From the NCBI GenBank assembly GCA_965644295.1, contig CBFFRP010000350.1, forward strand, positions 1 to 33,803: 33,803 bases of DNA, written 5' to 3'. This stretch comes from Paraphysomonas bandaiensis (lineage: Eukaryota; Protista; Chrysophyceae). Below are positions 4,285-31,279 of the stretch, piece after piece. Made by a program: the position numbers and the translations under genes. Each line of letters opens with the position of its first letter. Within the stretch, counting starts at the first letter, position 1. The notes beneath the pieces were generated by a model that saw only the letters and a program-made list of their open reading frames with translations, had not been told where the DNA came from and did not search any database.

Positions 4285-7200
4285 ATGCAAAACCCCTTCA
4301 ACGACATTATTGTTAGTACAGCACCATCAGGTGTAGACTTATGCAGAACACCGTCCTCTCTCGTCAAGTTAGAGAGCCCCCGAAAGGAATTGGTGTGTAA
4401 GCGAGTGATTTCGACTGAAACGACATGCAGAACCCCAACTCGCCCACCACAGCAGGAAGTAATGCGTGAGTCTTCTGCTGCAGTGTCGGCTCAAGATGTC
4501 ACCGAGTCCCCAAACACCATTGCTTCTGAGGGTAACGCTCCTCTTAATATAGATTTGGTTCTCACACAAATTTGTGCGTTGGAAATACAAAATCTCAAAA
4601 TTCAGAGGTGTTTGGGACACCTTTGCATTGAATCCTTGAATGAGCGCGCGTTGCAATTAGAGCGGCAGAATAGATCACTGTTAGACACCATTAGAAATCA
4701 TAATCCAGACATTGAAATCCACTCCTGTAGTGACGAAAACAATAAAGTTGGATACGTCAATATTGATTTTGGGAGCGATGGAGGCTTAGAACTAGAATGT
4801 TTCGGAATTACGGAGATAAAACACATTTTTAGAGAAAACAGTTCAAATATGAAAATCTCATCGAAATGCAGGCCGCCATCATTTGGTGAACATTCTACAC
4901 ATTCTGTAGAACCGCATCGGAAAAGTATACGGCAATCTATTGGGGCTGGGCGATTTTCACTGGCGAATAGAGTTTCTCTTGACTGGACAGACAAAGACGG
5001 AGCTCGACGGAGCTTTCTTCCTCCCGCCTATGATAGTTATGTAGGTTCCCAAAGACAGAGCATCGATATTGCCATCAATTCCATGAGGCTCAGTATTAAT
5101 CAACCTCTACAAGACGCCGATATAAACTGTAACTTTATGGAGTTCTGCATTGTGGGTGTGAAGCGTGAAGTTCTCACGGGACTTGAAAAGCCACAGATGG
5201 GATCGACACAACCAGCTGCTATTCTGGACAACTTTCCCAGACAAAATCAACCATTTATTGACTGCATAGCGGATTTTGCATTTCCTGCAGGAGTTTTTCT
5301 GCATATGACAGAGTCGAAACGATATGCTGAACTTTTGTGCAGGAAGCGACGGGATCAATACACTGTTCTCCAATTTTCTGACTCGTTCGGCACCCCCACT
5401 TATGCATGTTGTCTAATAGTGACTGATGCAATACCACTACATAGAGAGCGACACGCGAATACGATTGCAGCCTTGTCTTATTTGGAACGTCTTGAACGTT
5501 GTGCCTATGTTGTGAAACGATTCATGCGATTCGCTGTGCGAAAATGTCGCTCTATGTACCGCCGCGAAATAACCAATAAAGCTGGAGCGATAGTGGGATA
5601 TGTGTCGGTTAAACCTCCACTTTCTGACAACACCAACACAGACGGCTCTTGTTCTCACGGGAAGCAAGTAGGTGTAATTGAACGATCGAAGAGTGCTAAA
5701 TTCGGCGCAACGTTATCGAAGCTTAAGGACACAGTTCAATCCCGACTACACAAGGACAAATCTCCGAAATCACCGAAAAAGACTCATAAGTACTTTGAGA
5801 GAGCCCTAGACATCATGGACGGTGATAGTGATGTGTCAGAATCATTGTCAGAGTCGAATGCGTCGTTCTCCGGGTCAGTCCACTTCAATTCTTCAGGACG
5901 GAATTCCGCATCAAAATTGCCAAAGAGACACTCTGGAAGGGCGACTGTGCAGTATGTCGTTACCCAACGCGCATACTGTATTTTAAGTGCGCAGCCCATG
6001 CACTCTAAATTATTCCAGGTACATTCCTCTGAATATGGCTACTAATCTGTGTATGATTACCTATATGTTGGTAGATACTTGAGGAGATTGCGAAACGTGA
6101 GAGTAAACAGTGCAACGCATTAATGTGGTGTAATGATGGAATTGAGTCACGATTCAGCTGTGAGAGTTCAATATCTAGTCTGAGTGCAATGAGTTGGGAG
6201 GGTTGCAATAGACCGCTGCCATCTGTCACCGAGGAAGCGGATTCGAATCGCCTGCATCGCCTGTCATCAGGAATGAGCTCCATATCCCTAGCGGGGCTCT
6301 GCCAAGGCCCAGACTATGGAGTAGGAGGGGAGTGTTTTACTGAAGAACACAGGTCCTGCCGCAGGAAGTTTCTCGAATATGTTCAACACCATCCCATGAT
6401 TACCGGTGTGATTAATAAGGAAATTAGACTTTCGTTTCCGTCATACCTTGAGAGAAAGATTATACTACCTTCGGAGTCGGTTACTATGGAGGTATATGAA
6501 CTGATATGTATGCACCAGAACTCACATATTCATGCATGTGTAGGAATGGGCCAGTGCGGTTGTCTTATCTATAATGAATCCCTCCACGATAATAAGCGTG
6601 CTCAACCTTCTCGTGCTAGAGAAATCATTAATAGTTTTTGGAACTAATGTTAGTATGGTGACAGCTGTTGCCACTGCTGTCGTTGGGTATCTAGCACCTT
6701 TTACGTGGCAGGGAGTTTTTGTTCCGTTAGTCCCTGCGAATGCAGTTGAAATACTTCAAGCTCCCGTTCCTTTTGTTGTGGGTACTTGTTGTGACTTTGA
6801 ACTGTCTACTGTTGCCAATTCAGCTGCTGTTTTAAACCTAGACAAAATTCTTGATTTTAATGAAGCCCACTCAAAATGTGACAAAGTGCTAACCATGCCT
6901 GATATATCTGTGATGATGCCACTAGACCAGGAGTTACGAGCAACTCTCAATAACGCCGCGAAAGTGTTCTCATCTAGGTTAGCAGACGACAAGAAAAATC
7001 TCCAACTCTCCTCTTTTCTTTATGACATTAGTTTGACGGAGAAGTCAATACTGAAAGAGGTACGGGAGGTCATTGAACAACACAATCAGATGTTTTGTGG
7101 CGATTTGGTCGTTGCCGATGGTTGGCGTAAGTACGGGTATGTAAAAATGGATATCTACTTATTTTGATGACTAATATTGTATTGCAGTACCTACGATCCG

Positions 7201-7499
7201 TCGACAGGTGATTTTGATTTCTACCCACAATGGTTTCTTGATCACCAGCGTTCTATTTTGGAATTCCAAGACAGTGTGGTTCATACTCAACTCTTTGCGT
7301 CATATGTTGACAAACTCAGAAATGAATACATTGAGAAAAACTCGCAAAGGTCTTTTCTGTTGTTTATTAAATATTTGTTTTTGATGTGGTATGTATCAGA
7401 CTATTCTTAGCAGAATGGATATACTTTCGGTACTTGCAAAAGAAAAAACGAAATGGTCTTATTCCAGCCCATAGTGCAGTGAGGCAAAGAAGTATGTAG
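4285..7499 (+). CDS. DENN-domain protein (putative Rab GEF), 5 exons
   Basis: Exons ~4285-6018, 6075-6491, 6544-7136, 7188-7349, 7400-7499. uDENN: FMEFCIVG..ILDNFP..IADFAFPAG..YACCL. cDENN: RAYCILS, LLVLEKSLIV, YLAPFTWQGVFVPLVP..ILQAPVPFVVG. dDENN: VHTQLFASYVD. Confidence 0.88.
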
Positions 7500-8383
7500 T
7501 TGATTGGTTTCATTTCACATTATTGTGGACTGTTGAGTTCTAAATTATATCTATGTAGTGTATGTCTTTTATTATTTATAGCACAAAATAATGGTCTCGA
7601 TGATCGAAACATATCACGCAATGTCGATTATATATATCGTTTTTATGCGTGGTAATTTATGTCTTGTTGGGCACTTCACGTTGGTTGCTTTGGTAACCTA
7701 GTAAGGAGTGCAGTCGATTACTATTGATGAAGATTGTTGTCATTTTAACGTATTAGAGTTTGTCAGAGTAACGAAAACCGAAATTATAGAACAGAATTAT
7801 CCATACATTACATTCTATATTATGATTTCACAGAGAGTCCTAATGTTCAATCGTATATAATTAGCAAAGTCGTATACTAAGGTGTTAAACAATAAATTAA
7901 TCGCTTAAATTATGCAAAATAATCAGTTTAGTATATTGTATATTGACTTTTGGTCATTATTTACAGTTAGATCGTTAAAGAAAAGTTAAGTAATCAGACT
8001 AGTCCTAGATAGATTTATTATTATTGCTCATACAATTGTGTCATTGCGTATAAAACACGTCACCAACGTAATTTCATCATTCTGATAGCAACCACAGATA
8101 AACTTCCGTATCTTGAATCGCTATGATCCTATTTTACTTCTCACGAGTCGTATTACCGTTTAGCGTATACTACAGTTCTATTTTAAAACTACATACGTGT
8201 TACAACACTCCCATTCAACGAAGAAACGAGTAATCGTCAGTATACTTCAGCCAATCATCTCTTCTAAATGTAGGCATATTATACAAAAAATGAATGTGAA
8301 ATCTTCATAATGCATAGTGATACTGTGTACCCCACACTAACTACTGTACCACAGTCATGCGATTATTTGTTTTAGTTGCCTTG

Positions 8384-9262
8384 TTATGATGGTTAGGATA
8401 CATGTTAAGATAGTGTGTTTACAGTGTGAAGTGTGGTGGTTGCGTGGTATACGGGGTCGTATTTCGTATATATGCGGTATTGTTGTGATTATTGTTGTGC
8501 GTTGTTACTATACACTGTACTGTGTATGTATGATGGTGTAGGAGAAGTGCAACGGGAAGAAGAATTTCGTCGACATTCGTGGCGAAATATCCAACGACGA
8601 CCCGGAGGCGGAGGAAGAGATACCACGAAAGCTCACGAGCAGGGTAAGTAATACTGTTCATAAAGATGGTGACGGGGTCGTATTTTGTATATATGCGGTA
8701 TTGTTCTGGTTATTGTTGTGCGTTGTTACTATACACTCTGTACTAACTGCTTATGATCCTCCACCTACTAGTAATGTGCCTCCAGCGGCTGTTGCCGCGT
8801 CGTTTCCGAGCATAGGTACTAATACTACTGTAAGTAGTAGTGGTAAAGATAGCTATATGCTTATGCAATGTATTCAAAATCAGGCTATTCGGTTGGAGCG
8901 TTTGAAGTCTCAAGCGAAGCAGATGTAGCTATATGAGAATATGATATTACAAAACACAAGTAATAATAGCAGGGCCAACTTTTAACGCAATAAATACTGC
9001 TAATAACAACTATACTTGCGACTTTTTCTTTATCTTTAACCTCTCAGATACAAATTACAGTAAAATAATAACTCAATACTTATATATGAAACCTGGTGAA
9101 ATTGCTTTACCAGATTTCGGTATTACCTCGACTTATGATGGTTAGGATGCATGCCGAGAGAATGTATTTATATTGTATCGTGTGGTGGTTGTGTTGTTAT
9201 GATGGCTATGTTGCATACCGAGAGAGTGTGTGTTAAAAATGTGACGCGTGGCGGTTGCGTTG
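8384..9262. repeat. degenerate ~64-nt repeat units plus a 66-nt direct repeat
   Basis: Units of TTATGATGG(T/C)TA..GTGTGGTGGTTG at ~8384, ~9133 and ~9197. Near-identical 66-nt direct repeat at 8451-8516 and 8672-8737. Confidence 0.8.
8542..8928 (+). pseudogene. orphan exon-like / decayed coding fragments
   Basis: TAG|102-nt open segment (EKCNGKKNFVDIRGEISNDDPEAEEEIPRKLTSR)|GTAAGT at 8542-8643, then a coding-looking stretch at ~8750-8928. No complete gene can be assembled. Confidence 0.3.
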
Positions 9263-9812
9263 TTATTGTTTGGATACACTGATGTTGATTCTTCAAACTT
9301 CTTGTAGCAAGCGGAAGTTTGCAGAATCGACTTTAGTGTATCCAAACTTTATGGTCCCAGTAATACTAGATGAATTGGCAGAACTATACGTTTTCGGAAG
9401 CCGATGGCAATGCTTTCATATAGGTCGTACGACTTCTAAATTGAATTCAACAGCTGATGAAAATGATGCTTTAAGCCAATCTACACTCTTGAAGTATCAC
9501 AGATATGGTTGGAAAAATATTGCCTTGTTATGATTTTTACCCTCAATGCTTTCAAAGAGTGAGCACATATCTGTTAGAACTTATTATATATATAGTGCTG
9601 AGTTCTACTGTATGATGCAATATAGATGGTGCAGTTGAAGTGAGTTAAGAGTATGAAATAGATGAAAGCACCACCTAGGTGAGCTTTAGCAGATTTGCAT
9701 GACCCTGGGCATCCAATACTTACGAATTACGTATTCTACTTTACTTAACTCGCTTAGAAATAAGGTAATACTATGCTATGCATACTGTAAATACATAAAC
9801 ATGAGTGCAGTA

Positions 9813-9830
9813 TAACCCTAACCCTAAACC
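9813..9830 (+). repeat. short interstitial telomere-like repeat
   Basis: TAACCCTAACCCTAAACC, i.e. TTAGGG/TTTAGGG type on the opposite strand. Confidence 0.5.
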
Positions 9831-10502
9831 ATATTCTTATATCCAGGAAAATTAGAAACTTTCACGCATTTTGTGATACAACGGGTCCTTTTGAGGACTA
9901 ATCTACAGCAGGACCTGGTAAGCATTAATGGTAATGGCATGTTTTCAAAGCACGATGAGTTGTTTAATCGATTGGAAACTGGAGATGTAACTATTACTGA
10001 TGGCCAAACGGAAAGAACCAATGCTTTTGTCAGCTTCAACCCCATTTTGTTCCAAGAAGAATTGTGTTTCCATATGATATAAGATGTGAAAACTATATGT
10101 GTGATCTGTGGTGGTAGTTTGGCGACCCTAGTAGAAATATAGAACTAGTAACGAAGGTAAAGCCTGCAGATCATTGTTCGAGGAAGACTTGCGGCGATCC
10201 GAAACTGCTATCTAGAGTTTATACTAAACAATCATACAGGCTCAATGATATATAGGCATATAGTCAGGTCTGTTTCATTGAGCACTCAAATGTAACCTAT
10301 GTGTGCGGTCTCATCTACTCGCATCACACAATCTCAATGAGCCGCATTTCTTCTATAGATAAGACAGCAGAGGTGTGCAACTCAGTGCCAGTTATTGTAT
10401 GATACATACAGCATATGAAGGGGCGTGTATGTTACATATGGCTGATTAGATATATGAGCGAGTGCTACTGCAGTGTATCCCATGTACAGCAGTATACAAC
10501 AT

Positions 10503-10650
10503 CGTATCGGCATCCTTCGTATATTTTTGTTCAAAGATGCCCCTAATATTGAGACAACAATTATCTGTATTCCAGCCGTAGTTTTATTGCAGGAATATGG
10601 AGTAATTTTGCTTCAAATATTTTCCGAAAAAGATGATGACTGCCGAGACG
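10503..10650 (+). mobile_element. MITE-like element family A, copy 1
   Basis: Terminal inverted repeat CGTATCGGCA...TGCCGAGACG, flanked by AT on both sides. Aligns along its length with the reverse complement of 21458-21607. Confidence 0.75.
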
Positions 10651-10898
10651 ATAATACCTACCAATATACAGATTTTCATACTTTTCTCTATGTTTAGAAA
10701 TTTAGACGAAATTTTCTCTATTTTTCTGTGTGTGTTTCCGCCTCTTGTCTGCGTATCTTTCTTTTTTTTTTCCGTTCCGGGGATCGTGAAGCAGGAGGAT
10801 TCTTCCATCACACACAGTAATATACATATGCATGATCAGGGTATATCAGAGTCCTATTGTCGTATTGTTATCTATCCACACAACTAACTCGAACAGCC

Positions 10899-12715
10899 AT
10901 GGGCAACCAAACAAGCTCTCCAAAACAGCAGCAACCACCTCCCACTCCGCGACCCCCTCGCCGCCCAAACTACTCCATGAACTGGAACTCGCGGGTCATT
11001 GGTATGGAGCGTGCGAAGCGATGTCTGGACGCCACACTAAGCTTGCCAGCCAAATTTCCAACTTTTTGCCAACGGGTACCTCCCGTGCGATCAGTTCTCC
11101 TGTGGGGTCCTCCTGGCACAGGTTTACGCTTTACACTCTCACCGACAACACTTTAAAACCTTCAATGGCAGGTAAAACAATGCTGGCGAAAGCATTCGCA
11201 GAAGGAACGGGATTTGAATTCGTAATTATCAATCCAGGAAACACCATGAATGCATACTGGGGAGAAACGCCTACGCGAATTAAGCGAATTTTTGATGCTG
11301 CCCTTCGCACTCCCACTGTGATATTCATTGATGAATTGGATGCATTTGGATCGAATCGACGCGGTGGCCAAACCAACAGCACCTTTATGCTCCAGATTCT
11401 GACTCAGCTTTTACAGAGCATGCAAGATCTTGTGGACGCAGAAAATTGCAAGAGTGTGTTAATTGGTTGCACGAACTTAGTTTGTGAATTGGATGATGCT
11501 ATCCGACGGCGCTTCACCTCACTTATATTTTGTGATTTGCCCAATGCACAGGAGCGCTGTGAACTGATGAAGACGAATATTCCCGCAGTCGAACGAGATG
11601 TTTCACTAACGGATGATTTCTTGCTGAGGCTCGCAGAGAAAATGGAACTATTTTCTGGATCTGATATTAAACGGTTCGTTAATTATGCTCGCGAGGCTCC
11701 ACAAATAGAAATCCAAAGTGCCACGCATTTTAGACGCAACAATGACAACAAATGGGAACCTTGCTCTCCCACTGATCATGGAGCTGAAGAGATGACGTTG
11801 CAACGAATGGGACACGATGAATTGAACGTCCGCCGCCGGGTGACCAGTGCAGATTTTGAGCGTGTCTTGGAGTCATGCCTACCGACGCTCACTCAGAGTA
11901 AGTATGGCGTTTATTTGAAGGAATTGGGAGAAATTGGTGGTGGAGATCTCTCTCGTCGAGTGGGTCAAGTCCAAGATACCGTACAAGCATATAATCCGTC
12001 CAGAAAGGAAGCTGAAATTGATCGCATCTTTTTCAGTCGTGATTTACCAAGTTTGAGTGCTGGACAGATTATCCAAGAAGCCTCGGCTTCAATCTCAGAT
12101 CCACTAAAACAGGTGGAATGTGTGCAGAAATTTATTGTTTTTTCTGCGGATACTACTTCGGAGAGTCATAAGGTTTGCAAACAGATCGGACTATTGGTAA
12201 TGATTCTGCTTTGGATCTTCTCCTTTATTCCGCAGTTTATATGGATCGTGGCCACTCTCGTGAGCTTGCTTGTGCTCGCAAATGTTGTGATTATTCCATT
12301 GAAGTTTTGGTACATATCCATGCACAGTGGTGCGAACACAGACATGCTGACTTCGCAGCTGGAAACCGCGAAGGAGTACCTTTTCATTTTCCTCATTTCT
12401 GGAGTATTATGCGTGTTCAACTTTGTGCACATCACATATTTCCTTCTCATTGACGTTTTAGTCCTAACTTGGATATTTCATTCAATTCAGACGACCGTGG
12501 TGGCCATTGCTGGGTTCATGATGTTTGCATCTAGGCAGGATGTGAAGGCCAGGTGCAATTATGTGAAACGTTTTGTGGAGCAGGGACACTCATTTGCACC
12601 GTGTGATGTGCATGCAGTCAATGCCACTGGGACAGGTTCACCTGTTGCGATGGTGGGTTTGGCTATGGAGCAGGAAGCGGAAATTGGTGATGAGACAAAG
12701 AATGGAGATGCTTGA
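10899..12715 (+). CDS. Vps4-family AAA+ ATPase lacking MIT domain, with N-myristoylation motif and C-terminal transmembrane region (588 aa)
   Basis: Exons 10899-11121 and 11172-12715; the 50-nt GT-AG intron splits Walker A GPPGTG/KT. Walker B IFIDE, sensor-1 TN, arginine finger LDDAIRRRF, Vps4 beta domain IQSATHF..WEPCSPTDHGAEEMTL. Hydrophobic segments at ~12185-12530. Confidence 0.88.
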
Positions 12716-14165
12716 GGTCCATAATTGTAGTAGTTTCTTCTGGCAAGCTGTATCTATCTGCTGGAAGTTGCGAAGCTATCTGCAGTTTTTTGTATTCTAT
12801 ACAGGCCGTTAGCTGTCCTATTTTAGATAATCTAATAATTATTGCATATGTAATCGAGCTACAAAGTATGTACATTGTAATGTACTTAATAATTTCCTAT
12901 AGTTATTCTGTATCTTGTTATTTAGCTGGCCATCGAGTATACTACAATTTGGCATTATACTACGATTTGGGATACAGAGCATATAATAATAGAAAGCTTC
13001 ACGCAAGAATGACTCGTATTGAGTATGTTTATACTTATACGAGTTATGAGTGTAAGATATATTACTTTCTCACTGTGCCCTATACGCATTGATGTAAATG
13101 AGGATGATGTTATGAAGTCTGTCAATCATTGTCGCCTACATATTGTGTAATTTGATTTCCACGAACTTACATTATTAGGTTAGTAAGTGCTACCTGTGCA
13201 ACACTCTGCGGAGGATGAATACATCACCCTATCAGTAGAATAGTATGTTGATATTTTATAGAGTGAATGTTTATTTCGAATAATTTTTACATTTATAGGA
13301 TGTGTTAATTTGGTTGGAATAACGTTTATACACCTGTTTTTAAGATAACACCATGAATGAATACTTACTAGGGATTCTCGCAATCGTGGATGGACTCTGC
13401 TAATATGCACGTAAAGTGTAGATCTAGAAACACACAAAGAAAATACCGAGATTTGAATAAAAATTTATGCATTGCTTATCTTAATCGGCACGATCACTTT
13501 AATAGGGCACGCTCTCGGAACGGGGCGATATCTGTTCAGCATGTGTTGTTGAGCCTGTCTAAGGCAGTTGTAGACGCATAATACCTTATTGGGAGAACCT
13601 TACAGGATGACCACTGAGCACACCTTCTGCAAAATAACGGCTCAAGCAGTATCTCATCCGATCCCTCTTCCACTTCACTGTCTCTTCTGATGGTAATAGC
13701 CACACACATGAATCAGTTGTATCAAGCGGTTAAAAGTCATCGTACTGGTCTTGCACAGCATGAAGCTTGCGGTACAGTGAAGTCATGTCAGTCCATTAAC
13801 GACTCCATCAATCGTCCTTTGTTTTAATCTGCAGGTTGGGTCATAATTTCACCCCACAATAGACTGTCTGTGTGTCTATATATGGTCACATGACCCTCAC
13901 ATCTAACACACATACTCCTGCAGTATACAGCAACCGTATATACAAAATACGTACTCAGACTGACAGGACGTAGTTGTACACAGGAGTGTATTCTATTCTG
14001 CTCTCGTATAAGAGTACATACGACATACAGCAGCACCAGCAGGACGAGTACATACAAGACCCTGTACGTCATGTGTGTATGCTTATAATATTTAAGTAGT
14101 TGCCAGGGACACGGGCTTACTGTATAACTTGTTTTATATATAGCCTTTTTCGCGAAGGTTAAAGT

Positions 14166-15461
14166 ATGGACGTTGCAATGCCATCTCTACAGGATACTGG
14201 CCTGCGCAGGTAGGAGAGTAATGCCATATATACATCTCTCTCTGAGCTTTAGTTTCAGTTATTATATTAACAAAATAGAAGAAATGCAAATACTCATATC
14301 GGAAAAAACTCAAAATCTTGAACGTTTGAAGGCACAGAGAAATGAGTTGAATCACAAAGTGCGGATGATACGTGAGGAGTTGACTGAACTCCATGAGCCG
14401 GGGTCATATGTCGGCGAAGTGGTCAAGCCAATGGGAAAGCTGAAAGTGTTAGTTAAATGCAGCCCCGATGGAAAGTATGTGGTGGATTTAGACAAGGATA
14501 TCGATGTTAACAAGTGTACTCCTAATACACGGGTAGCCCTGAGATCCGACTCTTACACACTGCATAAAATTTTGCCAACGAAAGTCGACCCACTCGTGTC
14601 ACTCATGAAGGTGCTGTATGAAAGTTGTATAACCTATTATTATAATATACTATACAGGTAGAAAAGGTTCCTGATTCTACTTACGATATGGTTGGTGGTT
14701 TGGATAAGCAGATTCAGGAGATAAAAGAGGTAATTGAACTTCCTATCAAACACCCGGAGTTGTTCGAAGCACTCGGTGTAGCCCAACCTAAGGGTGTGCT
14801 GTTGTACGGTCCACCTGGAACTGGGAAAACCCTCCTTGCTAGAGCTGTGGCACATCACACGGACTGTACATTTATCCGTGTGTCCGGGGCAGAGCTCGTA
14901 CAGAAGTATATTGGTGAGGGATCACGAATGGTTCGTGAGCTCTTCGTGATGGCTCGTGAGGCCGCCCCTACAATCATATTTATGGATGAAATCGATTCCA
15001 TCGGCAGCTCGAGAGTAGAAGGGTCTCAAGGAGGCGACAGTGAAGTACAGCGCACTATGTTGGAGCTCCTAGCTCAGCTTGATGGCTTCGAGGCAACACA
15101 GAACATCAAGGTCATCATGGCAACCAACCGAATCGACATACTCGATAGTGCCTTGTTGAGGCCGGGTCGTATTGATCGAAAGATTGAGTTCCCTAACCCC
15201 ACGACGGCTTCAAGAGCGGATATTATTGGTATCCACAGTCGCAGAATGAATCTTCTTAGAGGGATTGATTTGAATAAGATTGCTGAGATGATGAATAACG
15301 CGTCAGGCGCAGAGTGCAAGGCCATTTGTACCGAGGCAGGGATGTTTGCACTTCGCGAAAGAAGGATTCACGTCACGCAGGAGGATTTTGAAATGGCAGT
15401 TGGTAAGGTCATGAAGAAGGATGCTGACCAGAATACATCAATGGTTATGCTGTGGAAATAG
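14166..15461 (+). CDS. PSMC5: 26S proteasome regulatory ATPase Rpt6 (3 exons)
   Basis: Exons 14166-14209, 14259-14610, 14658-15461. Motifs [63 protein letters not shown], and C-terminal LWK. Confidence 0.98.
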
Positions 15462-15963
15462 ATTTGATTTTCTTACAGGACAGTTGTCTATTATTTTGGG
15501 TGCAAGTAGTGACAGTTAGGTGTTGGTTACGGTGAATTTATCCCAATAAAAGTATAATGGGCTGTATTTGTTGATTGTCCAACAATGAAGTGATAATGTC
15601 CAGTTTCGTTGCACCCTTTTGTAAGCACCATGAAAGTTCATGCAGCATTGCGACTATATATTATATATATAGTATGTGGTCTCTATTCTCTATTATACGT
15701 TTCAACAATACTCCTATAACACCAGCTGTATACATATTCATTTTGTAATCATATCACTTAATAGAATAAAGTATAAAGTAGCGTCAACTTCAGAGACACT
15801 ATATTTGTTTCTAAGTTTCTAATTATTGGTAACGTGTCTACATGGTGGAGCAGCTAAATAACTGCAAGAGGGATGGGTCCTGTTTTCCCGTAAGTAGCAG
15901 TCAATAGATTTTATAGAAGTGAATCAGTGAATCTATTTAGATACTGTATTTTTAGATAAGTAA

Positions 15964-16774
15964 GGAACAGCAGAGCTGTGTACCAAATAATTGATTTTAA
16001 TTGACGAGTTCAATTAATTGGTCGGCAAATTAGAATAGAAATATAACAATTAATGAAATAGATATTAATGAAAAACCGCTGGTTCTACACTTACTAAATG
16101 TGAGAGACCTGCACTAAGTCTATCACCCTACACGTCTACCTCTCCCAAAGGTCATGCACAAGTGGAAGCGCCACGGTGTAGCCTCCGCCAGCTACTTCTT
16201 TGCCCTTTGCCCAGGCCCAACTCGAGGCCCGCGCCATCTCCAGACACGGCGGCGCCCCAATCCACCCCCTCGCCCATGTTTCTCAGGCTAGGCACACTCG
16301 ACTCACGACTCAATAATTCAGAATCCTGTGCCTCCACAAAGTCCTGCAGAGCCCTATCCCATTGGACTCCCCCCTGACTAATGACTAACCCCCATCTGCA
16401 CTTCCCGGACTTACGTTTAACGAGGGCTTCTCCCTCACATACAAGAACGGAAGTGGTCGCACATATACACAAACCGCATTCGTAGCGTTATATAGTAGGA
16501 TATGAGAATTTGTACTAACTAGTTACAGGTAGAAGTCTATCTACTTGACTAGTTTTCATTTTTCATCTAGCCTTACCTTGTGCTGATTCTCGACTCCTAT
16601 TGCTAATAATAAGACTGCCATATATAGGGAACAGCAGAACTGTGTACCAAATAATTGATTTTAATAATTGATTTTAATTGACGAGTTCAATTAATTGGTC
16701 GGCAAATAATAATAGTAATAATAATTAATAAAATATGCATTAATTAATTGACAATTAAATTTTACCCACCCCTG
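15964..16774. mobile_element. hAT-like non-autonomous element with duplicated left end and GC-rich internal segment
   Basis: Direct repeat 15964-16030 / 16628-16707. The left terminus CAGAGCTGTGTACCAAATAATTG pairs imperfectly with the right terminus (reverse complement CAGGGGTGGGTAAAATTTAATTG, ending 16774). Flanking 8-mers are AGGAACAG and AGAAACAG. Confidence 0.6.
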
Positions 16775-16849
16775 AGAAACAGGGACTACTCGAGCATAAA
16801 ATTCTCTAATCAAAACTTTTCAGTAATACGAAATTCAACAACACAGAGC

Positions 16850-17494
16850 TCAAGATTCGAAAGGGTAGCTGATGGCATTCCATGGGTGAAAGCCAGTCAT
16901 ATCGTTATGATAACACAGCTGTGGACTGTCTAAATGTATATGTTCACTTGGCAAGGCATTACCAATTGCCTTTAGAATAGTTTCTTTTACATTTTGAGAA
17001 GTGGAGTCGGACATAGATTTGTATTGATATGCAAGAGTAATATGAAATTCTCGGGGTTTTCTGTTTGAAAAAAATGGGAGAAAGCTTGTGAGGCCATACT
17101 GTTCTGCTAATTCGCAAATACTTCTTTCATGAGATTCATCAATAGTTCCCATTAAGAAAATGGCCGACGACACTAGTATATATTTGACGGAAAATACTGG
17201 CTTAATATTCTGCTGATCCACGCTGGCTTTAAGGTGCTGATAAAACTCCATATTCTTGTAAACAAACTCTTCCCAGCTTTCCGAATCGTTGAGATTACTT
17301 TTGTTATGAAGCATTGTGGTGGTCATGTGGTAACTATCCAAAGGCAAGGGTGAATAATAATTAGATATAAGCTCTGATTTAGCTAATGCATCATATACTG
17401 TCTGTAGAGATGAGAGGACCGCTCGGTCCACACATGAGACAATAGTAAACCCCTCAAAGCGACAGTAGTTGCCAGAGGTATCCACCTTTGCCAT
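16850..17494 (-). CDS. DUF1868-like 2H phosphoesterase
   Basis: Intronless. N-terminal KVDTSGNYCRFEGFTIVS, two HxT catalytic motifs (LPLDSYHMTT and FHITLAYQY), C-terminal LCYHNDMTGFHP. Confidence 0.8.
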   Translation of the reverse strand: MAKVDTSGNYCRFEGFTIVSCVDRAVLSSLQTVYDALAKSELISNYYSPLPLDSYHMTTTMLHNKSNLNDSESWEEFVYKNMEFYQHLKASVDQQNIKPVFSVKYILVSSAIFLMGTIDESHERSICELAEQYGLTSFLPFFSNRKPREFHITLAYQYKSMSDSTSQNVKETILKAIGNALPSEHIHLDSPQLCYHNDMTGFHPWNAISYPFES

Positions 17495-17639
17495 TTTTCG
17501 TTTCAATAGTCTTTTGAACTACCCCTTTTCAAGTACTGTACGTCCTGTCGAGCTATATCTGTGCTTATCTGCTGTCTGTCTGTGCATCAAACACCCACCC
17601 GTCCACTGCACATATTTACTATATGTATCTGTATTTCCA

Positions 17640-29580: not shown

Positions 29581-31279
29581 ATGTCAGATAGAGATGCGGC
29601 CACTATGCGTGTCATTGAGGAGCTTAAAAGAATATATAAATCTAAAATAATGCCACTTGAAAAGCTTTATCAATACGATATATTTCACTCTCCGATACTG
29701 AGTGATGCAGAGTTTGATTCCAAGCCTCAAGTTATGTTAATTGGACAGTACAGCGTTGGAAAAACATCTGTAAGTGTTACTATACTAATTATCACATGTC
29801 ATTTGATGATTCCTTTCAGTTCATTCGCTACTTGCTTGGAAAAGACTTTCCTGGTGTTCGTATTGGTCCAGAGCCTACAACTGATAGGTTTGTTGCTGTT
29901 ATGGATGGTCCTGACGAGAGAATTATTCCCGGAAATGCCCTCGCGATATCGAATGATTTACCTTATCGTGGACTCGAACAATTTGGTGTGGCTTTCTTGA
30001 ATCGTTTTGAAGGTTCACAATTACCTTCTCAAGTCCTAAGAAACATCACGCTCATCGATACACCTGGAGTTTTATCTGGTGAGAAGCAGAGGGTGTCCCG
30101 GGGGTATGACTTTCAACATGTCTGCGCATGGTTTGCCAGTCGTGCGGATTTGATTCTCCTACTATTTGATGCCCACAAGTTAGACATATCTGATGAATTC
30201 CGGGGGGTGATAGAATGCTTGAAGGGAAATGATGACAAAATTCGATGTATTCTAAACAAAGCTGATCAGGTAACCAGCGATTGCGCCCATGCATGATATG
30301 TACTAATTGGCGATTTAGGTTGATAGACAAAAATTAATGCGTGTTTATGGTGCATTGATGTGGTCGATGGGAAAAGTTATGAGAACTCCGGAAGTATTAC
30401 GTGTCTACGTGGGGTCTTTCTGGTCCGAGCCATTGATGTACAATGATAATGCTGAACTCTTCGAAATGGAGGAAGCTGATTTAATGAGAGATTTGCGCAG
30501 CCTTCCTAGAAATAGTGCCGTCCGAAAAATTAATGAACTTGTGAAAAGGGTTCGGATTGCGAAGGTCCATGCCTACATCATTGGGTACTTGAAAGAGCAA
30601 ATGCCAATGTTTATGGGTAAGGAGAGTAAGCAAAAGAAGGTGTGAATGATTACGTTGTCACAATTTAGTGTATTAATTTCTTTTACAGTTGTGTGCTGAA
30701 CTTCCTCAAGTGTTTCGAACTGTAATGAAGAGGCATAATCTTGCTCCAGGGGACTTTCCGGATATCAAAGATTTCAAATCTAAACTAGAAGAGCAAGACT
30801 TCACCAAGTTTGCGACCTTGAAGCCACAGCTAATTGAAGCCGCAGATATGACCCTTGCGTCCGATATTCCAAGGCTTATGGAAGCGTTGCCGAGGTCGAT
30901 CGACCCTGCAGTTGATATTAAGTTGATTACACCTACTTTTGTCGATGAAACGAAAGAAGTGGTGGAGTCCAATCCATTCGACGAAGAAGGCGATACCACG
31001 TGGTGTATGGAACAGTTTGTTCCCGAATATAAGCCACTTTTCGAGGAGCACCAGGTAGATGGATTTGTGTCAGGGAAAGCAGCCAAACAAATTCTAACAG
31101 CATCAAATATGGAAGTGGGGACTCTACGAAAAATATGGGATTTATCAGATATCGACAAGGATGGGCGACTGGACTTACAGGAGTTTGTAATTGCAATGTT
31201 CTTGACTGCACGTGTGAAGGAGGGCGACGAGCTTCCAGCAACCCTAGATCCTGATATGGTACCTGTTGAGAAAAGGTGA
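29581..31279 (+). CDS. EHD: EH-domain-containing dynamin-like ATPase (EHD/RME-1 family), 4 exons
   Basis: Exons 29581-29769, 29820-30269, 30319-30639, 30689-31279. Motifs GQYSVGKT, GPEPTTDRF, IDTPG, NKAD, and C-terminal EH domain LRKIWDLSDIDKDGRLDLQEFVIAM. Confidence 0.96.

Follow-up and report, generated by a model that had tools for sequence, protein, structure and literature searches.

A gene in the window, by which is meant the whole 33,803-nt stretch of Paraphysomonas bandaiensis DNA analyzed here, encodes a 588-residue protein of a conserved and apparently undescribed design, in which a Vps4-like AAA+ ATPase lacking the MIT domain is joined to a predicted C-terminal membrane domain. A keyword search of the literature, with most subscription journals outside its scope, retrieved no description of such a protein. 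Sequence comparison places the protein in an old, patchily distributed family that includes a member from Paulinella. The tentatively preferred reading, held at somewhat less than even confidence, is that this Vps4-derived ATPase of the meiotic clade is a permanent membrane resident that would work as an extractase in the manner of Msp1/ATAD1. The features of the gene are collected in Table 1.

Table 1. Features of the tailed ATPase gene, in window coordinates
Feature	Position	Strand	Basis
5' UTR; contains stops in frame and two upstream ATGs out of frame	10815..10898	+	transcript ends, sequence
First 23 residues, MIT-less: Met-Gly start as a candidate site of myristoylation, then a linker rich in Pro/Gln	10899..10967	+	
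Remainder of exon 1: start of AAA large domain to Walker A loop	10968..11121	+	alignment
50-nt GT..AG intron inside Walker A	11122..11171	+	RNA contigs
AAA cassette in exon 2: K76, E129 (Walker B), N176 (sensor-1), R186-188 (arginine fingers); C-terminal helix 11894-11938	11172..11938	+	
Pore loop 1, A-Y103-W104-G	11252-11263	+	alignment
Vps4-type beta-domain insertion	11714..11836	+	Pfam, alignment, AF2 model
Helical linker, about 80 residues, family-specific	11939..12181	+	alignment, AF2 model
Hydrophobic block 1: predicted TM1 and TM2, short turn	12182..12304	+	AF2 model
Polar inter-block loop, acidic in most members	12305..12385	+	
Hydrophobic block 2: predicted TM3 and TM4, invariant D502 and W508	12386..12532	+	alignment, AF2 model
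Amphipathic basic helix ending at 12586, then a tail that is not conserved and the stop codon	12533..12715	+	
3' UTR; one run has poly(A) after 12857	12716..12863	+	RNA contigs

As read from the window, exon 1 extends from the ATG at 10899 over 74 codons to the Walker A loop, and beyond the intron the frame continues in exon 2 to the stop at 12713-12715. The intron is skipped exactly in RNA contigs from four runs belonging to four studies, and the whole gene is present on three single RNA contigs (10826-12863, 10840-12857, and 10830-12859), the second of which is polyadenylated; two of the three runs that supplied whole-gene contigs are typed as RNA by guess only, the contigs themselves being without the intron. 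These contigs confirm the original prediction of one transcript across 10899-12715 once a 50-nt intron is removed. The complete transcript-derived record P0001 (588 aa) starts with exon 1 and is 100% identical over exon 2. Sources from MMETSP and from marine samples are consistent with Paraphysomonas as the host. Transcript 5' ends fall at 10815-10841, and stops lie in frame at 10818 and 10833, within the 5' region of the transcript and upstream of the ATG, so that an MIT-coding exon cannot be in frame; the two out-of-frame upstream ATGs are at 10828 and 10832. With these stops and the full-length contigs, neither an upstream MIT exon nor a transcript end before about 12000 was seen. An unspliced ORF of 627 aa from 10832 was rejected, having no intact Walker A and an equivalent frame that is closed in the orthologue P0002. 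The homologue, family, genome, and fold-library searches described below were run per exon or with the tail alone, and the joined protein P0001 served for look-ups and pairwise comparisons, for the alignments and trees, and for a single fold.

Directly downstream lies an ordinary gene for a 26S proteasome ATPase (Rpt6-like; 14173-15461, + strand), with no functional link apparent, followed by a 2H-phosphodiesterase-like (DUF1868) gene with a weak Pfam match of 5.9e-05 (16850-17506, - strand) and an EHD-family gene with Dynamin_N, DUF5600, and EH domains (29581-31279, + strand). Short dispersed repeats at 10503-10583 and 13045-13104 draw many unrelated transcript contigs, and three telomere-like TAACCC units are internal to the contig at 9814-9831. 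A stretch of contig C385 (G000:C385:6000-15999, L036) is 95.7% identical to window positions 7091-17122 over 10 kb and contains many single-base deletions. Because of this identity and of similar deletions in its Rpt6 gene, C385 is taken to be a redundant, error-rich contig and was rejected as the site of a second paralogue; pseudogenes read from it are probably artefacts.

Exon 2 matches Pfam AAA (5e-22) and Vps4_C (2.7e-10), and yeast Vps4 is the top single-domain PDB match (104 bits). The AAA cassette comprises residues 24-330. All catalytic residues listed in Table 1 are intact, the arginine fingers are adjacent (RRR) with no RPGR insert, and the alignment indicates that the catalytic motifs are kept throughout the tailed family. 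Strands of the beta-domain are visible in the AF2 model, with the C-terminal helix at residues 316-329. The intact AAA core and Vps4-type beta-domain of the original prediction are thus found in Pfam matches and conserved motifs alike. Its claim that the MIT domain is missing also holds, since only about 23 residues, Pro/Gln-rich and poorly modeled, precede the AAA region, exon 1 has no Pfam match, and no N-terminal MIT domain is found by Pfam, in the AF2 model, or in the transcript 5' sequence. The N-terminal transmembrane helix and linker (fishhook) domain of Msp1 are likewise absent from the 588-residue protein.

The protein begins with Met-Gly, a feature that the original prediction does not mention. 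The same start is seen in each of the four lineages whose N-terminus is intact, and the residues that follow do not align. This conserved dipeptide is a possible N-myristoylation site; the PROSITE pattern PS00008 occurs in three of five sequences, including the protein studied here, and an N-myristoyltransferase gene is present in the genome. Of 135 fetched proteins, 8 start with Met-Gly, and no fewer than four of these belong to the family; the set is largely prokaryotic and a poor control.

Pore loop 1, likewise not remarked on in the original prediction, reads A-Y-W-G or A-Y-Y-G in four of five lineages and K-W-V-G in Paulinella, so that the lysine ahead of the aromatics is replaced by alanine in the non-Paulinella lineages. 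The second of these aromatic positions is aliphatic in all six canonical Vps4s compared. Extraction of membrane proteins by ATAD1 requires both pore-loop-1 aromatics, and the same trait has been noted in Cdc48 (PMC9273213). The double-aromatic loop lends indirect support to the dislocase option of the original prediction.

Beyond the C-terminal helix the protein continues for 258 residues, close to the 250 originally estimated, and these include the two predicted hydrophobic blocks of approximately 40-50 residues each, which are conserved in six relatives. The AF2 model of the whole protein (mean pLDDT 80, pTM 0.56) places four further helices in the linker at residues 332-399, then four long helices in the hydrophobic region (405-424, 428-460, 466-489, and 499-528), and finally the basic helix at 530-544. 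Membrane residence of the protein is predicted from this tail. Four crossings arranged as two hairpins are the simplest reading of the model, which may also accommodate two crossings with interface helices. The hydrophobic region is bordered on either outer side by several Lys/Arg residues, and most members have an acidic middle loop. This charge pattern points to an even crossing number, which would leave the ATPase and the C-terminus together on one side, presumably the cytosolic one. Relative to P0002, synonymous sites are saturated, and the pN values of the AAA core (0.17) and the hydrophobic region (0.19) are similar, indicating that the membrane domain is as constrained as the motor; purifying selection is therefore present together with the expression seen in RNA contigs, as the original prediction would have it. 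Searches of Pfam, PDB sequences, Foldseek, VIA-align (best Z 5.3), and ESM Atlas turned up no match to the tail. As the tail model used for the fold search has a pLDDT of only 64, the missing fold match is no proof of a new fold.

A tail-only search of 1.84 billion cluster representatives yielded five true relatives: P0002 (63% identical over exon 2), P0135, P0136 (a tail fragment), P0137, and P0138. The last is a protein of the cercozoan Paulinella chromatophora from EukProt, and the others derive from metagenomes or runs. The original prediction suggested looking for the same fusion elsewhere, and it occurs in the four relatives that include an AAA domain, Paulinella among them, all with identical part order, all MIT-less, and, if full-length, with one open frame across the junction; the gene of the orthologue P0002 also has its intron at the same position. 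The gene next to that of P0136 is matched at 47% in the Paraphysomonas genome, which suggests a related host for P0136. Contamination of the Paulinella transcriptome is conceivable as the source of P0138; this protein branches deepest in the family and is the one most like Vps4, and it is thus unlikely to have been copied from an organism closely related to Paraphysomonas. Distribution over a chrysophyte and a cercozoan requires transfer or many losses. Paraphysomonas and Paulinella are both scale-making taxa, and a possible connection with silica-scale formation was considered. Among the matches listed from GTDB genomes, IMG/VR, and JGI contigs there are no family members, only generic AAA proteins at 28-39% identity, a weak negative on which a prokaryotic or viral origin was set aside. 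P0139 was rejected as a spurious bacterial repeat protein. In two separate assemblies (L070:780-800 and L071), the P0137 relative is missing approximately 13-14 codons downstream of Walker A and its frame changes, possibly owing to mis-splicing, a broken copy, or assembly error.

The five family AAA domains form one clade (support 100/100), which lies within the meiotic clade and has a stem length of 2.69 changes per site, and the family together with Vps4, katanin, spastin, and Msp1 is split from Cdc48 at 100/100. Family and Vps4 occupy one side of a weakly supported branch, at 58/95 in one tree and 85 in another; this grouping is not recovered in a larger quick tree, and the stem is long. 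Grouping with Msp1 appears in no best tree and is not rejected (AU p=0.07), direct grouping with the host Vps4 is not preferred and likewise not rejected (AU p=0.10), and the trees do not group the ATPase with spastin, katanin, or fidgetin; single exons, not joined, represented the Vps4, Msp1, and katanin genes of the host in these comparisons. The ATPase appears nearest to Vps4 in the tree, a placement that is not firm. Stronger evidence for Vps4 ancestry than the trees is provided by the beta-domain, which within the alignment is confined to the family and eukaryotic Vps4-type proteins. In the trees the tailed family has as its nearest neighbor P0034 (94/90, with long-branch attraction as a possible cause), a 698-aa MIT-less Vps4-like protein with a beta-domain (cluster of 13, JGI/Logan) whose repetitive 375-residue N-terminus has no Pfam match.

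The search for a canonical Vps4 in the same genome, also proposed originally, located an MIT-Vps4 gene on contig C65 (G000:C65:138218-139710, - strand; L063). Its beta-domain contains a long Cys-rich insert with two CxxC-type motifs, possibly a zinc site, and this difference disfavors a recent duplication in the Paraphysomonas lineage. The proposal of a neofunctionalized paralogue accordingly stands with respect to the Vps4-type cassette and the loss of MIT, but a recent paralogue of the host Vps4 is not shown, the protein belonging instead to an old and patchy family. An Msp1/ATAD1-like gene with an N-terminal hydrophobic segment is present as well (G000:C348:169469-170600 region, - strand; L008); its pore loop 1, K-Y-V-G, lacks the second aromatic that is usual in Msp1/ATAD1. 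Since candidates for both canonical genes exist in the host, the tailed ATPase is considered additional, and replacement of a lost Vps4 or Msp1 was rejected. The genome also contains katanin-like, fidgetin/spastin-like, and Snf7-family genes. Vta1_C (the VSL domain) was not found in the genome, a weak negative given the short model.

In the preferred extractase reading, the ATPase would form hexamers, as its intact motifs suggest, and the aromatic pore loop would grip a polypeptide, so that ATP hydrolysis could pull membrane-embedded or membrane-bound clients from the bilayer or from a complex. Fixed tethering would replace MIT-MIM recruitment, the C-terminal multi-helix membrane domain would determine the organelle, and the pore-entry face would be kept at a membrane by a probable N-myristoyl group carried on the short Pro-rich linker. 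From membrane insertion to organelle, each of these steps is deduced from sequence. Consistent with this reading are the family-wide catalytic motifs, the Y-W or Y-Y loop, the constrained transmembrane region, the Met-Gly starts, and the host's separate MIT-Vps4. The SP motif of the beta-domain loop, which in Vps4 contacts Vta1 (PMC5413351), is not conserved among the tailed family, and this also counts in its favor. Against it stand the Vps4-type loop of Paulinella, the replacement of lysine by alanine, the lack of a fishhook domain, the Msp1-like gene in the host, and the occurrence of the myristoylation pattern in only three of five N-termini. ATAD1 is oriented with its N-terminal face close to the membrane and its C-terminal helix towards the cytosol (PMC9273213). 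The anchor of the tailed protein follows the equivalent helix, implying that the linker wraps the ring or that two membranes are involved. By analogy, either the 80-residue linker would pass around the ring, or the two ends would sit on different membranes, or the exit face would rest on the membrane domain.

The tailed protein could instead have remained a Vps4 in function, an ESCRT-III remodeler resident at one membrane for which MIM recruitment would be unneeded. The beta-domain and the branch shared with Vps4 are compatible with this, as are the Snf7-family genes and the still Vps4-like pore loops of Paulinella, but the absence of MIT, the loss of the R-R-I-K motif of pore loop 2 in four lineages, a stem length that implies a changed job, and the presence of a canonical Vps4 make it less likely than the extractase reading. 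Less probable than this is a motor whose membrane domain is positioned beneath the exit of the pore, or else in another membrane, and which would drive proteins into a membrane or across it, or transfer them from one membrane to another, instead of only extracting them. We know of no translocase precedent of pore-exit or two-membrane design in the meiotic AAA clade. In its exit-face form, judged slightly less probable again, a ring seated on its own membrane domain would act as a translocase or insertase, pushing cytosolic polypeptides through a six-domain membrane assembly. Such an arrangement would fit an anchor that comes after what, by analogy with ATAD1, is the exit-side helix, and a membrane domain that exceeds the requirements of simple anchoring in size and conservation and includes an invariant Asp and Trp; nevertheless, the tail matches no channel fold, and an N-myristoyl group would favor the entry face at the membrane.

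Marginally lower still stands the possibility of a reticulon/REEP-like shaper combined with a spastin-like motor, in which hairpins and an amphipathic helix would bend ER tubules and the ATPase would remodel microtubules or coats. The two hydrophobic blocks with short turns, followed by an amphipathic basic helix, resemble such a shaper by eye, and M1-spastin provides a precedent. However, the tail has no match to Pfam TB2_DP1_HVA22 or Reticulon, its hhalign probability against the host REEP is 0.45% (with shallow profiles), so that homology is not supported, and the ATPase falls outside the spastin, katanin, and fidgetin groups. Finally, a read-through fusion of two genes, a pseudogene, or a mis-assembly, as the frameshifted copy on C385 and the frame-breaking gap in L070 and L071 might suggest, is effectively excluded by the single poly(A) transcript seen in several studies, the open junction in all full-length relatives, and the redundancy of C385.

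If the extractase reading is correct, the meiotic AAA clade would have gained a membrane-resident motor twice, the second one on the Vps4 side and anchored at the end opposite to that used by Msp1. The family offers a natural test of the double-aromatic loop as a specialization for membrane clients, Paulinella having a Vps4-type loop and the others an ATAD1-type loop, and a test of whether plain tethering can stand in for an MIT domain. It also adds a conserved predicted membrane domain without known match.

Among known systems, M1-spastin is an AAA motor tied to the membrane by hydrophobic hairpin(s). The tailed protein, with its predicted hairpins, resembles M1-spastin and its REEP/reticulon partners in this respect, but spastin retains MIT and has its hairpin at the N-terminus, and the present tail has no detectable REEP/reticulon homology. 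Giardia has diverged Vps4 paralogues, GlVps4a-c, with distinct locations, which are not known to have a membrane domain, and GlVps4b conceals a non-canonical three-helix MIT (PMC12611102); the 23 low-complexity residues ahead of the AAA region here are too few for such a domain. Msp1/ATAD1 shares membership in the meiotic clade, an anchor (here predicted) in place of a recruiting N-domain, and two pore-loop-1 aromatics (PMC7018516, PMC9273213), but the Msp1 anchor is one N-terminal helix with a linker domain, and Msp1 has no beta-domain. With Vps4 and VPS4A/B the tailed protein has in common the single AAA cassette, the RRR arginine fingers, the beta-domain, and the C-terminal helix, and it differs from them in its missing MIT, its diverged pore loops, and its long separate branch. 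Canonical Vps4 is soluble and ends at the C-terminal helix, whereas the tailed protein continues from that helix into its membrane-domain extension.
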